64,000 bases of DNA. It comes from Trichosphaerium sp. ATCC 40318. Lineage: Eukaryota; Protista; Tubulinea. The position numbers and the translations under genes were made by a program. A model generated the notes under the pieces. It made no database searches, was not told the origin of the DNA, and saw only the letters and a program-made list of their open reading frames with translations. The stretch is from NCBI GenBank assembly GCA_038496445.1, contig JALMLS010000585.1:248001-312000 (forward strand), written 5' to 3'. Below are positions 4,665-39,778 of this stretch, piece after piece (the first letter of the stretch is position 1; each line of letters starts with the position of its first letter).

Positions 4665-6796
4665 ATGAATTTTACCGGTTTTTCTGTAGAACAGGCTCTA
4701 TTATACTATCATGAGCACCACAAAGAAGTTTTCAGTAAAATTACGACAAAACAGCACGAAACACTCGTAAAACAAGTTGAAAGTATCGTAAAGGCTGTAA
4801 ACGAAAACCTCGTAAAACAACTCACCTCAGCGCTTAAAAAACACTTGGATTCTATTCCCAACATTAAAAAGAGGCGTTCGACATCACAGCCAAAGGACTT
4901 TGAGTCACGTAAACGTAAACAAAAAGAGAGGTACGTTTTCTCCACTTTGAAGCTTGTTTTACTTACTTGCTGAACAGTAGCCAATCGATACAACATGAAG
5001 AACTGAATAACATTGTTTATTTTCCTCCAGAAGTCATTTCGAATATTCTACAGCTTACAGATGCCGAGGATAGATTTTCTGTTGCTCAGTCATGTCATCT
5101 CATGGCTGATATTATTCACGGTATTGTTGGATACAAATACGTTTATCTCAAGAGATATCAAGATATTCTAAAGATTCAACAATACAAAGGCGTTATGAAC
5201 AACAGCATTATTCAGTTGGACTCAATGAGAGATAACACAATATTTTCATTACTTGCTGGTTGTCGTAATATCAAAAGATCACCAAGGAGCAAGAGAGTGA
5301 ATGATAGTGATCTCAAATTAATAAGTAGTGTTAAGCAAGTCAGTTCTATTGATATCAGCGACTGTAAACATGTTACAGATGACGGCATAAAGACATTGAA
5401 AGGTGTCCATACGATAAATCTGAGTGAGTGTAAGCAATTAGGAGATGAAGGCATCAAGGCACTAAAAGGTGTTCATACTATTGTCCTTAATCGTTGTGAT
5501 AAAGTGACTGATGAAGGTATCAAAGCATTGGCAGGAGTACATACAATTGAACTTAGTGGTTGTAAGCATATAACAGATGAAGGTATAAAAGCACTTGCTG
5601 GAGTTCACAAAATTTTCCTTAGTCGTTGTAGACTGGTGACAGACGAAGGCATAAAGGCATTGGCAGGGGTTCATACTATTGTTAGTATGCGTGGTACTTC
5701 AGTAACTGGTGAAGGTATCAAAGCACTCACGGGCATACACTCAATTAGTGTCAGAGGCTGTAAGCGAGTAACTGATGAATGTATCAAAGCTCTCAAAGGT
5801 GTTCATACGATTGATCTTAGTTTTTGTGACCAAGTATCTGATGAAGGTGTAAAAGCGCTTGCAGGCGTACACACGATTGATCTTAGTTGTTGTGAACAAG
5901 TATCTGATGAAGGTGTAAAAGCACTTACAGGTGTACACACGATTGATCTTTCAGGGTGCATGCAGGTGACGGATGAAGGCATCAAAACTTTACAAGGAGT
6001 TCATAAAATTACGCTTTGTGGGACTTCTGTGAGAGATGAAGGTATCAAGGCATTGGCAAGCGTACATACAATTGATCTTCGTAATACCCAAATAACAGAT
6101 GAAGCCATAAAAACTCTGGCTGGTGTTCATACAATTAATCTTTGTAACACCTCTGTGACAGATGAAGGCATAAAGGCATTGGCAGGGGTTCATACTATTG
6201 TTAGTATGCGTGGTACTTCAGTAACTGGTGAAGGTATCAAAGCACTCAAGGGCATACACTCAATTAATGTTCACGATTGTAAACAGATAACTGATGAATG
6301 TATCAAAGCTCTCAAAGGTGTTCATACAATTAGTCTTAGCTGTTGTGAACAAGTAACTGATGAAGGTGTTAAAGCGCTTGCAGGTGTACACACGATTGAT
6401 CTTTCAGAGTGCAGACTGGTGACAGATGAAGGTGTAAAAGCACTAAAAGGAGCTCACACAATTGATCTTCATAATTGTACCCATATAACAGATGAAGCCA
6501 TAAAAGCTCTGGCTGGTGTTCATACAATTAATCTTCGTAACACCTCAGTTACAGATGTAGGCATTGAAGCACTGGTTGGTGTGCATACAATAGGCATTTT
6601 GGGTTGTGACAGGGTAACAGATACAGGTGTCAAAGCACTCAAGAGTGTTCACAAAATTAGTATTGGTAGTTACTATGTGACAGATGAAGGTATAGAAGCA
6701 ATAGAAGTTCATACTGTAGAAGATCATTTCGAAACTCTTTCAGATGACTGTGTTGCAAGGCTTGAAGCCTTTTCGGTGAACATCCAGTATTTCTAG
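4665..6796 (+). CDS. F-box/LRR protein, copy A (2 exons; ~21 LRRs of 21-22 aa)
   Basis: Exon 1 is 4665-4930 (basic KKRR..RKRKQK). Intron 4931-4980 runs GTACGT..TAG; the acceptor is supported by the paralog. F-box FPPEVISNIL..VAQSCHLM, then repeats GVHTIxLxx(C)xxVTDEGIKALx. Confidence 0.9.
5636..6410 (+). repeat. Internal block duplication in the LRR array of copy A (offset 519 nt = 8 modules)
   Basis: 5636-5745 and 6155-6264 are nearly identical (GVHTIVSMRGTSVTGEGIKAL.GIHSI). Similarity continues into the following modules. Confidence 0.85.
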
Positions 6797-7091
6797 TTGT
6801 TATTTGATAGAATAAATTCAGATTCATTGTAAGTAAATTGCGTGTTGGATCTCAAAATAACTAGTTTGGGATTCACTGGGATTGGCTTGGAAGCAATAGT
6901 GTGCATCGCCTTTTATCATAGATACATGGATAGCATTCAATATGAGCAAACAAGCCCCATTGCTTGCAAAATAGTGCTGTGGCTATACTATCCACAAAAG
7001 CAAATAATTGATTTGCGATTTTTCATTGTGGTTTACATCTTGTTAAGTTGTGCTCTATGCCTTACTTAGCATCTAGAACTAAGCGTAGTAC

Positions 7092-9082
7092 ATGGCCATA
7101 GACGTATCTAATGAAAGTAAGCCAATTTATGAACATTATGAAGAGCTCAATCTAAGAGAGCCAGTATTGAGGTAAATATTACTACAAATACGTTAAACGC
7201 ATTAACGTGATAAAGGGGAGTATATGATTATGGCTTTGAGAAGCCTTCTAAAATACAACAGCAAGCAGTTATCCCTATATGCTCTGGTACGTGTATACTA
7301 TATCTAGGGAGTTCTATAACGTCCTTGTTTTCTTCAAACGCTCATTTCTTAGCAAAAACCTCCGATATGCGTGAACTTGTGTATTTACTTCAAACTACCC
7401 AGAAAATAGCACTTTCATCAACTTTGAGAAATTTCTAACAAACAGTGATCAGAAGAGTTTACGGTTTCAGTGAATTAGCAGATTAATTTTTGACGTTCGT
7501 TTAGGATCAGATGTCGTTATAGAACAGGATTTGTCATCTGATTCAGTTGCTGCGTATCTAATTGGTATTTTAAATAGAATCAATACTGAAAATCATCATG
7601 TTCAAGCACTAATTCTATGTCCTACTCGTGAACATGTTTATAATGTTTCACAAGTTTTTTTGATGCTTGCTAAGTACACAAACGTTAATACTACTCGTTG
7701 TATTGGAGGTGTTTCACTAAAAGGAGACATAGAGACGCTCAAAACTACAATACATGTTATTTTTGGTACACCTGGAAGGGTGAATGATCTTTCGAATAGG
7801 GTACTCAATTTGTCATAAACACTTTTGTAATTGTCACGTTTTCTACTCCCTGGATAAACATCATGGATAATGCCAGTGTTTTCAACTGTAAATACAGAGT
7901 TCAAAACATCTCTTTAAACTTCCTGTGATCCATACAAGCAACTTTTGATTTGGTCTTGATTCTTAATGTTTTTTAATTTGACTATTCCAAATGCTGATTG
8001 AATCGCATAGGGAGTCTTGGATCTCTCATATCTTAAAATTTTTTGTATTGGTTCATTGGCTAGGGTATTAGGTAATGGATATGATGCCCTTATAGATGAT
8101 ATTCACGCAAAGCATCCCCATCATACTCAGGTTATTCTAAGATTTGACAAAACATCACCAGTAGTAGAAACTGCTATTGAAAAGTACACAAGAAATGCTA
8201 TCAGATGTGGGTATTTAGCTAGTAGAGGATTGAACCTTAATGTACGTTTTGGTATCCTCACTTTTGTGTTGTAAACAATATTTCTTCTTGTTTATGTTAG
8301 ACTAACTAGACCAAAAAAGGGGATTAAGCAGTTTTATGTCAAAGTGGATGATAGACAAGAAAAGTTAAATGTTATGCTTGAAATACTGGAATCATCAGTT
8401 TCTTCTTCAGCTCAAGTTATTATATATGTTTCTGATTATAGACAAAGAAAACAGATTGCACAACAGCTTAAACAAGACTATCCGGTAATATTTAAGTCCA
8501 AAACTTTTTCTAAGCGAAATGCTTCTGTTTTACATTACTTTGTTGTGCATCGCATGTGACTGACTGAATGCTTTTATAGATTTCTTACATTGACAATAAT
8601 ATAAAAGTAAAAGAGGAGGAAAAATTAGAGCAATTAGAGGTAATAATAGTTAAAACAATCAACATAGTTTTGGTCAATTGTGACCTCTTGTGTCATTTTG
8701 CACATTAATTCAAACCATTTCAAGGCCAATGTCAGCCTTATAATTTAATGACGATTTTAATACTAGTCTACATAACATGTTATCTAACTAACTTTTGTTT
8801 GAACAGAAGTTCCAAAGAGGAAGTACACGTTTTTTGCTTTCTGATGACTACACAATGACACATAGAAAAGATGCGTCCATTGTACATTTGGTTATAAATT
8901 ATCACCTGCCCTATTCTCCTGAAAGATATATTACACGTGTTGGAAGGATTGGTCGTTATGGTAAAGTTGGGACTGTTATTAATTTTAAAGTAGGAAATGA
9001 TAACACAGTTGATAAAATAAGACAATACTATCAAACAGAAATAGCTCTTTTGGAACCAAACAAACTTTCAGACTTGTGGTAA
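7092..9082 (+). CDS. eIF4A-like DEAD-box protein with degenerate ATPase motifs (pseudo-helicase), multi-exon
   Basis: Q motif GFEKPSKIQ, QALILCPTRE, CIGG, GTPGRV, VINYHLP and YITRVGRIGRYG are collinear with eIF4A. Walker A, DEAD and SAT are replaced. Confidence 0.85.
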
Positions 9083-9607
9083 CAGCCTAATAAAATGAAT
9101 ATACTCTTGAAAAGTGTAAATTACCCAAGATATTACTGCCAGATATGTTATTTTACACCTACAGCGCCTGATAGATCAATCAAAATCAGTTATGGGTAAA
9201 CTGTTATTTTGCCATTGTTTGTTGAAATTAGGATGGATTCGGCACTTGTTCTAAAGAAACGCATACTCTGTATATTCGTCTAACAGAAGACATTGAACTA
9301 TATATATTAATAAAAATGTTGAAGCATTTAAATCTTGCAGTAGTTAGTAACTATGAGCATTTTATTATTCTTTGTAAAAAACTCTACAATATGATTGGCT
9401 TGTTGCAAATACTGCAGCATTATTCCTTTTGCATAATGCCAGTTCTGATTTCGTTTCACTAAATCTAGCTCCTAGGACTTCTCCTGAAAGCTTATGCTGA
9501 ATAGTGACAAATCTGTCTTTTGATAAAACTACAAAGCCACTTAGCAAAAAACTATAACATCCAAAAACATGACAAACTTCAAAAAGTGAAGGAAACGTTG
9601 GAGTAAA

Positions 9608-12995: not shown

Positions 12996-14905
12996 TTACT
13001 CAAACTTGGCTATTTTTTGTTTGAATTCTTCAAAAAGATCATCAAGTTTAACAGGATCAGGTCTTCCTTTCTTCGCATTTCTATCTCGTACATTAACTGT
13101 TGATGTCTTTTCTTCATTACCACCAACAACCAAGATATAATTATACTGATCAACTTGAGCCTGATGAAAAACAAAAACGTCAATACAAAAAAAACATAGA
13201 ATCTCGTACACTTCTAATTCTCTTTCCAAATGTCTCACTTCCTCCATGTATATCCACAAAGTACCCAGCCTTTCTTATTTCTTCTTGTACTTTCTCTGCA
13301 TAGGCGTAGTGTTCAGGTTTTATTGGAATTACTTTAACTTGTCTAGGTGATAGCCAAAAAGGCCATTTTCCGTTTGTATGCTCCATTAAAATAGCCATGA
13401 AGCGTTCAACCGAACCAAAAATAGCACGATGAATCATCACCTAATAGTGAAATGAATAAAAGGGCAAGTATAACAACCAGCAGATCAAAAATCTTTCAAA
13501 CAAAAACAATTAATTTGACATATTTCTTCTTTAATGGTATTGATGTCAGATCGGGTCGTTTAAAAATATCAATTGGGCAATTTAAAGAAAACAGCGGAAG
13601 AGATGTAATTAAGGTCATAACGAGATATTCCGAAATGCCAATAAATAATGTAGTGATTGAAACAAAACAAGAAAAAAGGTGTCTTACCGGTCTTTGTTTT
13701 GTATCATCTTCAGCAATATAGTTCAAATCAAATCTCTCAGGTAAGTTAAAGTCTAATTGTATAGTTCCACATTGATGCTGCCTTTCCAAAGAATCTGTAA
13801 GCACAACATCTATTTTCGGACCATAAAACGCTCCATCTCCAGGGTTGACTTCATAATCAATTTTTCGTATTTCTAATGCTTTTTTAAGAGCAGTCTCAGC
13901 ATCTTCCCATCCTTTTTCATCACCGATTGCTTTCTCTGGACGCGTAGAAAGCCGAACTTTATACTTAAATCCGAAAGATGTATAAACACGTGATAAAAAG
14001 TCTAAGGTATTTGATACTTCATCTTGGACTTGATCTGGTTTACAAAATATATGCGCATCATCCTGACAAAATTGCCTGGAAAGAAATTAGCTTCAACTCA
14101 AAGTCTCAAAACTAAATACTACCTCAATCTTGTGAGACCTGTAAGACCTCCACCAAGCTCATTTCTATGAAGAGGAGAGAAATCTGCAAGACGCAGAGGT
14201 AGATCTCTGTACGAATATGTCGCAGCCTTAAATATCAAAGCATGACCTTAAATAACAAAAAAATTAGAATCTAAAAGAACTTTGTTACAGTACCAGGGCA
14301 ATTCATAGGTTTAATACCAAGTGTAAGTTTCTCGTCAGTATCAGATCTACGTGTATTACTTATATGAAACATATCTTCCTTGTAGTGTGCTGCATGACCC
14401 GATTGTTCCCAGAGTTTCCAATCATAAAGAATTGGAGATTTTACTTCTTGGTATCCTCTTGTGTTGTATTCTGACCTTATCATGTCTATAAGACCATTGT
14501 ATATACGCGTTCCGTGAGGTAAGAAGAATGCTCTAGATAATACATGTTACAGATAGAAGTGAAACGAATTGCAAAGGCTTCTGTTCATTTGACACTTTTT
14601 TTTTCCGTTTTTGCAGAAATGATTCTCACGTACGAGCCAGGTGATAACGGGTGAAACATGAAAAGTTTTTGTCGTTTACCGATACTTCTGTAGTCATTTT
14701 CTGGGACTACAACAAGAATGTCATGTTTAAAAACGTGTGAAGTGGTAAATTGTTTGCTTCCTTTATTTTAGGCTTTAAATTAGTACGTACGTTCTTCTTC
14801 AGCGTCAACAACTGTTTTGCACCCATTTCTGATTACTTTTGGTTGAATTTTCGTATTAACGCGCCTAGACGCTGATCTGAGCGTAAATTGCGCGATTTTG
14901 AGCAT
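12996..14905 (-). CDS. thrS: Threonyl-tRNA synthetase, probably mitochondrial (transit-peptide-like N-terminus, no editing domain)
   Basis: Spliced motifs [66 protein letters not shown] and [21 protein letters not shown], followed by the anticodon-binding domain. Confidence 0.95.
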
Positions 14906-38560: not shown

Positions 38561-39778
38561 ATGGCAACAAACTCTTCAGCCTTAGAACCTAGGCACAAAG
38601 GCACCTACAGTTACCTACAGAGCATTCCTCTTGAATTACTTCTATATATTATGGACAAACACCACGAAGCATACGTTAAGATGCCTATGTTATCAAGAAA
38701 AATAGCTCTAACAAGGTTCAATGATCGACTCGAGAAGCACGGCAAATGGGTGAAAAGAGAGCGTATTATGTTTGCATACCATCACCCAGAGGAACATATT
38801 GTACAAGTACATTACTGGATACATGGTGAACTAGCACAATTTATCAAGTTTCTTTGGGCACGTGTAGAATTTAACACCGAGTCCTCGTGCAGGGTACCAA
38901 CTGAGAAGCTACAGTGTGTAAATTTTGAACAACAAGAAAAAGTACATATCGCGTGGTACAGCACTAGTCCCATACGGAACCTAAGTTTGTCAGACGATAA
39001 TATACTGCAAGGAGAGTTTAGGAGGTGGTACAAGTGTCACTATGTGAAGGGTAAACGTGAAGGAGAATATACCGAATGGTATGAAAACAATCACTTGATG
39101 AAACAATATTTTTACATGAATGGTAAACGACATGGAAAGTGCCAGCAATGGTATGATAACAGTATATTGAAAGTAGACGCTACCTACAAAAGCGGGAACA
39201 AAGATGGAAAGTATAGGAGTTTCCATTCAAATGGTCAAGTTAAAGTGGAGTGCAACTATAAAAAAGGCAATCAACATGGGAAGTACAGAGCGTTTTATGA
39301 GTCAGGAAGTTTAAGGAGTGAACGAAAATATGTCAATGGCAAAATCAAAGGCGCTTATAGAACCTGGTACAGTAATGGTAAGATAAAACTAAAAGCCATC
39401 TATGTCAACGGTAAAAAAGATGGGCTGTTCCAGACATGGTACAGAAATGGAAAAATGCATAAGCAGTGCTATTACAGCAACAATGAACGTCATGGAGAGT
39501 ATAAAGAGTATTACGATAATTGTCAATTAAAACTTGAATGCCAGTATGTCAATGGTACACTCAAAGGAAGATACAAGGAGTGGTCCGTAGAAGGAAGATT
39601 GCGTACAAGTTTCAGGAGTGGAGAACGAGTTTTAAGTCCTACCCAGCACAGACTTGGAATAGTATTTAGGACACTCCGCAATTCTTTTGATGGCTCTTTT
39701 ATCAATATACCCCCATTGTCACAGCACCTCTATCCTACTAGCATTTTTAGAACAAATTCAAATGACTTGCACAAGTAA
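38561..39778 (+). CDS. F-box-like N-terminus + MORN-variant repeat protein, 405 aa, intronless
   Basis: YLQSIPLELLLYIM..RFNDRLEKHGKW, then ~8 repeats of 24 aa (Y.NGK..G.Y..WY.NG.LK). Confidence 0.85.
   Translation: MATNSSALEPRHKGTYSYLQSIPLELLLYIMDKHHEAYVKMPMLSRKIALTRFNDRLEKHGKWVKRERIMFAYHHPEEHIVQVHYWIHGELAQFIKFLWARVEFNTESSCRVPTEKLQCVNFEQQEKVHIAWYSTSPIRNLSLSDDNILQGEFRRWYKCHYVKGKREGEYTEWYENNHLMKQYFYMNGKRHGKCQQWYDNSILKVDATYKSGNKDGKYRSFHSNGQVKVECNYKKGNQHGKYRAFYESGSLRSERKYVNGKIKGAYRTWYSNGKIKLKAIYVNGKKDGLFQTWYRNGKMHKQCYYSNNERHGEYKEYYDNCQLKLECQYVNGTLKGRYKEWSVEGRLRTSFRSGERVLSPTQHRLGIVFRTLRNSFDGSFINIPPLSQHLYPTSIFRTNSNDLHK

Follow-up and report, generated by a model that had tools for sequence, protein, structure and literature searches.

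In a 64,000-nucleotide (nt) stretch of the protist Trichosphaerium sp. ATCC 40318 (contig JALMLS010000585.1, positions 248,001 to 312,000; hereafter the window), a gene at 7092-9082 on the forward strand encodes a full-length paralogue of eIF4A whose ATP site has been replaced throughout, while the RNA-contacting strip of its first RecA domain has been kept. The gene is transcribed and spliced, as seen in complementary DNA (cDNA) contigs of a public sequencing run (X1), and its replaced motifs are shared with a single diverged relative, here called P0001, known from a transcriptome assembly. We consider it very probable that the gene encodes a functional pseudohelicase. The fuller reading, in which this eIF4A-derived pseudohelicase would have an ATP-free binding role at the sites that eIF4A occupies, stands in our judgment about evenly between right and wrong. 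eIF4A, a drug target, is the archetypal DEAD-box protein, and a naturally selected dead version can be regarded as an evolutionary experiment in ATP-independent use of the eIF4A fold.

The gene model and the state of each motif are as follows, with amino acids abbreviated as aa.

7092-9082, forward strand: the dead eIF4A paralogue gene; seven exons, coding sequence of 1179 nt, product of 392 aa.
7075-7091, forward strand: 5' untranslated region of 17 nt, with the mRNA 5' end at 7075 (start of a cDNA contig, run X1).
7092-7171, forward strand: exon 1, ATG at 7092, aa 1-27 with the last codon split (model; junction 7171/7216 in cDNA).
7216-7286, forward strand: exon 2, carrying the Q motif and the Arg that matches human eIF4A1 R45 (both junctions in cDNA).
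7232-7258, forward strand: Q motif GFEKPSKIQ, intact; Tyr replaces the upstream aromatic Phe.
7505-7800, forward strand: exon 3, the RecA1 core with dead Walker A and intact Ia, GG and Ib (Pfam, PDB, cDNA).
7522-7548, forward strand: Walker A, AQSGTGKT replaced by (E)QDLSSDSV; no Gly-Lys-Thr, and the same letters in cDNA.
7621-7632, forward strand: motif Ia, PTRE, intact.
7705-7710, forward strand: GG, intact.
7768-7779, forward strand: motif Ib, TPGR, intact.
8011-8241, forward strand: exon 4, the former DEAD and SAT sites (motif comparison; junction 7800/8011 in cDNA).
8050-8061, forward strand: motif II, DEAD replaced by GSLA (GSLD in P0001).
8143-8151, forward strand: motif III, SAT replaced by FDK.
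8320-8484, forward strand: exon 5, the start of RecA2 with GIKQFYVKV, an acidic patch that matches human D265/E268 (E/E here) and motif IV VIIY (model, motif comparison).
8580-8639, forward strand: exon 6, 20 aa, ISYIDNNIKVKEEEKLEQLE, in which the HG/QxxR stretch is gone (both junctions in one cDNA contig).
8807-9082, forward strand: exon 7, motifs V and VI, with the stop codon TAA at 9080-9082 (Pfam, PDB; junction 8639/8807 in cDNA).
8840-8872, forward strand: motif V as SDDYTMTHRKD, with TDLLARGID replaced by DDYTMTHRKD (ARGxD by THRKD).
8933-8962, forward strand: motif VI as TRVGRIGRYG, with HRIGRxGR replaced by TRVGRIGR; His has become Thr and both Arg are kept.
9089-9094, forward strand: AATAAA hexamer 7 nt past the stop codon, a likely poly(A) signal (sequence reading).

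Losses and retentions are not spread evenly over this protein. Both dead proteins keep 46% of the residues that are invariant in canonical eIF4A; against that background, none of the 16 ATP-site residues is retained (P=5e-5), whereas 9 of the 10 RNA-contact residues of RecA1 are (P=0.006), and the two classes differ from each other by Fisher test (p=3e-6). The split is not chance erosion. Without the Lys and Thr of the P-loop and the acidic residues of DEAD, a DEAD-box protein has no canonical ATP binding or hydrolysis and no ATP-driven closure or unwinding. The initial annotation had listed the loss of Walker A, DEAD, SAT, ARGID and the motif VI His together with the retention of the Q motif, PTRE, GG and TPGR in a full-length frame interrupted by introns, and motif comparison and the spliced cDNA bear out this description in all its parts.

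Transcript evidence comes from three short contigs of run X1 that match the window at 100% identity. All six introns of the model are of the GT..AG type (44-218 nt), and the cDNA splices out introns 1, 2, 3, 5 and 6 exactly at the modelled borders. Coverage extends over 7504-7617 and 7732-7799 in exon 3 and 8010-8213 in exon 4, with 0 differences in either exon, and over 8348-8483 in exon 5; the letters of the dead Walker A and of the dead DEAD and SAT sites are identical in the cDNA, so that the transcripts seen carry neither editing nor an alternative exon at these places. The contig that begins at 7075 bears a 21-letter non-genomic tail, which we take to be a SMART-type template-switch oligo; this tail, together with the skipped introns, identifies run X1 as cDNA and sets the mRNA 5' end 17 nt before the ATG. 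Intron 4 (8242-8319) lies outside the RNA cover; it holds an in-frame stop, and the modelled junction 8241/8320 aligns gap-free to the transcript-derived P0001. The run, from 2023, is small, and the depth of its contigs is unreadable as an expression level. An alternative exon restoring GKT or DEAD, an escape that the initial annotation had left open, was not found: a motif scan revealed no GxGKT or DEAD coding potential in the introns in three frames or in the whole 64 kb in six frames.

P0001 is a 387-aa open reading frame (ORF), labelled complete, from an MMETSP transcriptome assembly (mmetsp Transcript_18432). When 1.84 billion representative proteins were searched exhaustively by HMMER with exon 3, it was the sole match below 1e-30 (E=4e-34, 63% identity over the exon); the remaining matches are canonical DEAD-box proteins at no more than 46% identity. 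Aligned over 387 positions, it and the spliced window protein are 56% identical, with gaps in frame only, and Pfam recognizes both domains of P0001 (DEAD 2e-20, Helicase_C 2e-19). It is dead in the same places, reading EKEFSGESV, GSLD, YDK and ARVGR, with the second motif VI Arg as His. Since this state is common to both proteins, catalysis was lost before the two diverged. The replacements are themselves conserved: the rebuilt P-loop reads E-x-[DE]-[LF]-S-x-[DE]-S-V in both, and S..SV, CIGSL.RVL and R[FY]DK are held in common, which points to a new constraint acting on the former active site.

Following P0001 itself, a word-indexed search of 5.8 billion proteins gives canonical eIF4A only, at no more than 38% identity, and the best identity of the window protein to any canonical eIF4A is 35.6%. 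No exon-sized fragment (54-171 aa) of either dead protein turned up in a word search, two JGI scans (one with the exon-3 pair alignment, one with P0001) found no further relatives in metagenomes, and an IMG/VR scan found no viral ones. The public protein collection, MMETSP included, contains nothing near-identical to the dead eIF4A or to the 405-aa ORF elsewhere in the window; P0001 therefore probably comes from a different protist and is probably an orthologue.

Other eIF4A-like proteins with degenerate Walker A and/or DEAD motifs occur in public data (P0021, P0038, P0095, P0100, P0027 and P0005). They were found in the mite Dinothrombium tinctorium (RWS05142.1), in several metagenome or Logan contigs, and in a gene model from Dissophora that has two tandem eIF4A N-domains, the second of them degenerate. 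They do not group with the window protein and P0001. Dead eIF4A copies may thus have arisen repeatedly, and some of these sequences may be gene-model errors.

A competing explanation is that the gene is a transcribed duplicate in the course of pseudogenization, whose ORF is intact by chance. Some features are what such a copy would show: identity to any canonical eIF4A is low, the family is tiny, and the number of conserved residues lost in motif V and the HG region is slightly higher in the window copy than in P0001, the losses peculiar to the window copy also being the more radical. Neutral simulation speaks strongly against it. Starting from the window coding sequence and allowing only unconstrained substitutions, with no insertions or deletions (indels), both frames stayed open in 0 of 1000 runs at the protein divergence of the pair, with a mean of 15 premature stops (minimum 5), and in 0 of 300 runs at the divergence from canonical eIF4A. 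All indels relative to P0001 are in frame, six GT..AG introns are kept with five of them spliced in RNA, and the two copies do not evolve at significantly different rates (41 versus 32 unique changes, p=0.29, Tajima-type count). Conservation within the pair follows structural constraint as well: identity is 68% at the columns that are invariant among 109 canonical eIF4A sequences and 44-52% at variable ones (Mann-Whitney p=8e-5), and 106 of 382 columns, those of the rebuilt motifs among them, are shared and derived in the pair. We regard pseudogenization in progress as highly unlikely. A processed (retro)pseudogene, the other form that decay might take, is ruled out by the introns and the intact frame.

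Both copies have been kept open and constrained by selection since they diverged, as judged from their sequences, and this argument for long-term maintenance holds whether P0001 is an orthologue or an old paralogue. A dead state shared with P0001, in frames held open under constraint, marks the gene as a pseudohelicase and not a pseudogene. The initial annotation had proposed as much, naming lack of expression, a restoring exon and neutral evolution as the ways in which its proposal could fail; the proposal survives on each count, and, judged by its canonical motifs, the protein would neither bind nor hydrolyse ATP.

Descent from the eIF4A family is firm on sequence comparison. In the window protein, Pfam assigns exon 3 to DEAD (5e-13) and exon 7 to Helicase_C (9e-6); the best PDB sequence matches are eIF4A-I/II/III and Dhh1/DDX6 for exon 3 (about 1e-14) and eIF4A-III for exon 7 (1e-13, with yeast eIF4A also matched), and exon 4 matches eIF4A-I only, weakly (E=0.19). 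Full-length P0001 scores 246 bits against human eIF4A-I (E=4e-72), 241 against yeast eIF4A and 236 against eIF4A-III, compared with 168 for DDX6 and 164 for DDX39B. A maximum-likelihood (ML) tree under LG+C20+F+G4 was built from 33 rows with hand-picked representatives of the eIF4A-I, eIF4A3 and DDX6 types, leaving out highly divergent or doubtful rows of a first tree. It supports the dead pair at 100/100 and splits an eIF4A group that includes the pair from the DDX6 outgroup, again at 100/100. In this tree the eIF4A3 clade (itself 100/100) does not include the pair, whose nearest neighbours, weakly supported, are eIF4A-I-type sequences and whose stem is very long (2.2-4.4 substitutions per site). 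Of the placement relative to eIF4A1 and eIF4A3 that had been suggested for phylogenetic analysis, the position within eIF4A is thus clear; a sister relation to eIF4A3 costs 10 log-likelihood units when forced and is not rejected (approximately unbiased (AU) test, p=0.17), with the branch being long. Origin from a translation-type eIF4A paralogue is favoured.

How might such a protein act? We infer that it would work without ATP turnover, as a binding subunit with two candidate surfaces: the RecA1 RNA strip (Ia, GG and Ib), kept beyond background, and the surface with which human eIF4A1 docks on the MIF4G/HEAT1 domain of eIF4G. It could take the place of eIF4A on eIF4G or a different MIF4G partner, and/or sit on mRNA, without unwinding, as a natural counterpart of the engineered dominant-negative eIF4A that blocks eIF4F-dependent translation. 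The precedent is R362Q eIF4A, ATPase-defective and, in the account of Pause et al. (1994) as cited in PMC4838371, a dominant-negative inhibitor of eIF4F-dependent translation; it is this precedent that favours a site-occupant mechanism. A natural non-catalytic occupant of the eIF4A site, serving as regulator or competitor in eIF4F-like complexes, is by analogy the single likeliest mechanism, and we put it forward tentatively. If docking on eIF4G proves true, the protein would represent a new type of endogenous translational regulator.

In human eIF4A1 the residues that pair with eIF4GI are R45, D265, E268, D296 and T298 (PMC7470955). The window protein has R, E, E, D and P at these positions and P0001 has R, D, E, E and P, a pattern compatible with docking on eIF4G or another MIF4G protein that does not discriminate between docking and its absence.

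Several points weigh against the reading of an ATP-free binder at eIF4A sites. At the eIF4G contacts, both proteins have similar residues in 4 of 5 positions, a retention that does not exceed background (P=0.33), and the equivalent of T298 is Pro in both dead proteins. The loss of canonical ATP binding and hydrolysis in the window protein is something we infer from the motifs alone. Closure on RNA ordinarily requires ATP in DEAD-box proteins, and two of the RecA2 elements that contact RNA, QxxR and motif V, are lost in the window copy. Expression support amounts to three short contigs from one small run. Two members of the family are known, each from a little-studied marine protist, and P0001 could be an old paralogue.

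The indifferent eIF4G contacts would fit a non-catalytic scaffold in a ribonucleoprotein outside translation initiation, comparable to MUT-15 or Utp25, where the eIF4A fold would provide an RNA platform and a docking hub for nucleases, tailing enzymes or ribosome-biogenesis factors. Both of the pseudohelicases of DEAD-box-like type that are best documented act in this way; the very long stem branch would also be in keeping with it, and the shared-derived columns with their conserved rebuilt active site suggest a new interaction surface. Set against this are the retention, unlike in MUT-15, of the Q motif and of eIF4A length and architecture with no added domains, and the fact that the closest homologues by far are translation-type eIF4A. 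By analogy a scaffold role is the main alternative, if rather unlikely.

The retained RNA strip invites another interpretation, namely a nucleotide-free RNA clamp whose stable hold on RNA would resemble that of eIF4A3 in the exon junction complex (EJC) but would involve no ATP. The initial annotation had raised RNA clamping among its suggestions. Besides the RecA1 RNA-contact motifs, the arginines of motif VI persist despite the loss of the ATP site, and the replaced P-loop has the same acidic and serine pattern in both proteins; these residues might pair with the motif VI arginines and hold the domains closed. Erosion of the RecA2 contacts in the window copy, the absence of ATP-driven closure and the His at the second motif VI Arg in P0001 make such a clamp improbable. 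Slightly more improbable still is a self-latched, nucleotide-free eIF4A in which the acidic and serine loop at the former P-loop would mimic the phosphates of a bound nucleotide and pair with the motif VI arginines. If true, its RecA domains would be permanently 'ATP-like', a built-in dominant-negative or EJC-like permanent clamp that, seated on eIF4G and/or mRNA, could throttle cap-dependent translation, for instance when the life cycle moves to another stage or when a giant virus infects the cell.

Viruses also enter into the last suggestion of the initial annotation, a decoy for pathogen factors that target eIF4A, such as giant-virus or bacterial effectors. The likely host lineage is reported to carry much giant-virus-derived DNA (PMC10521059). 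The absence of viral relatives in the IMG/VR scan, and a rebuilt active site that is conserved and not hypervariable, with no arms-race pattern, leave a decoy the least probable of the roles discussed here.

Other features of the window are of independent interest. Its base composition is AT-rich (33-40% GC); the Trichosphaerium draft has 37.7% GC and 8.7 introns per gene, and its single-cell transcriptomes became public in 2023 (PMC10521059). At 4967-6796 on the forward strand lies an open frame of 609 aa that encodes an F-box and an extended LRR_6 array; it ends 296 nt upstream of the dead-eIF4A ATG. Two exon-sized HGTP_anticodon ORFs (5.6e-8 and 1.5e-6) at 12999-13440 on the reverse strand form part of a class II aminoacyl-tRNA synthetase gene. 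The 405-aa ORF is a single-exon ATG frame of MORN_2 (YwqK-type) repeats at 38561-39778 on the forward strand (Pfam 2e-26); identity to its best relatives among the 5.8 billion proteins does not exceed 39%, most of these relatives being 'YwqK antitoxin' entries from bacteria or metagenomes, and the ORF may be a bacterial-type acquisition in a protist genome.

Comparison with known systems helps to place the gene. The nearest in form are the active factors eIF4A-I/II and Tif1/2, with which the window protein shares its length (392 versus about 395-406 aa), two RecA domains without extra domains, the Q motif, Ia, GG, Ib, the motif IV hydrophobics and the motif VI arginines. The dead pair is only 35-38% identical to them, and replacements affect Walker A, DEAD, SAT, QxxR, motif V and the His of motif VI; with the ATP motifs gone, the ATP-dependent cycle by which eIF4A is defined cannot proceed in its known form. 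eIF4A-III (DDX48) resembles the protein in the RecA2 features GRxGRYG, QYY and AINF, and exon 7 scores best against it; eIF4A-III, however, clamps RNA in an ATP-bound state, whereas the window protein has no ATP site. Dominant-negative eIF4A mutants, defective in catalysis and still able to enter eIF4F and block translation, follow the logic proposed here. They differ in being single-site and laboratory-made, while the window gene is natural, is represented by two sequences, has its whole ATP site rebuilt and has a docking on eIF4G that is predicted only.

Pseudohelicases remain a very small known class. Utp25 was called only the second proposed member in 2022 (PMC9539457), and MUT-15 was described in 2026 (bioRxiv 10.64898/2026.09.04.749402). 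Homology to an active family with degenerate motifs, in a gene that is expressed and maintained, is what characterizes a pseudohelicase of the Utp25 type, and the window gene combines these features. A full-text literature search for a natural ATPase-dead eIF4A derivative found no description of one, returning the Utp25 and MUT-15 papers and unrelated work only. Utp25/DEF, of the SSU processome, is similar in having a DEAD-box-like two-RecA fold, vestigial and dispensable motifs and an essential non-catalytic role (PMC9539457); it is, however, ancient and pan-eukaryotic, with an N-terminal extension and remote similarity to eIF4A, whereas the window protein is lineage-restricted and clearly derived from eIF4A. 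MUT-15, the CPUG scaffold of C. elegans, likewise has degenerate ATP motifs (DEAD replaced by NNAE), no ATPase activity and a role as an RNA platform (bioRxiv 10.64898/2026.09.04.749402), but it lacks the Q motif and is recognizable by structure search only, while the window protein has the Q motif and an eIF4A homology that is obvious in sequence. The DEAD-box-fold pseudohelicase is thus a known kind; what is new here is direct derivation from eIF4A, with the Q motif and RNA strip kept and the active site rebuilt and conserved.

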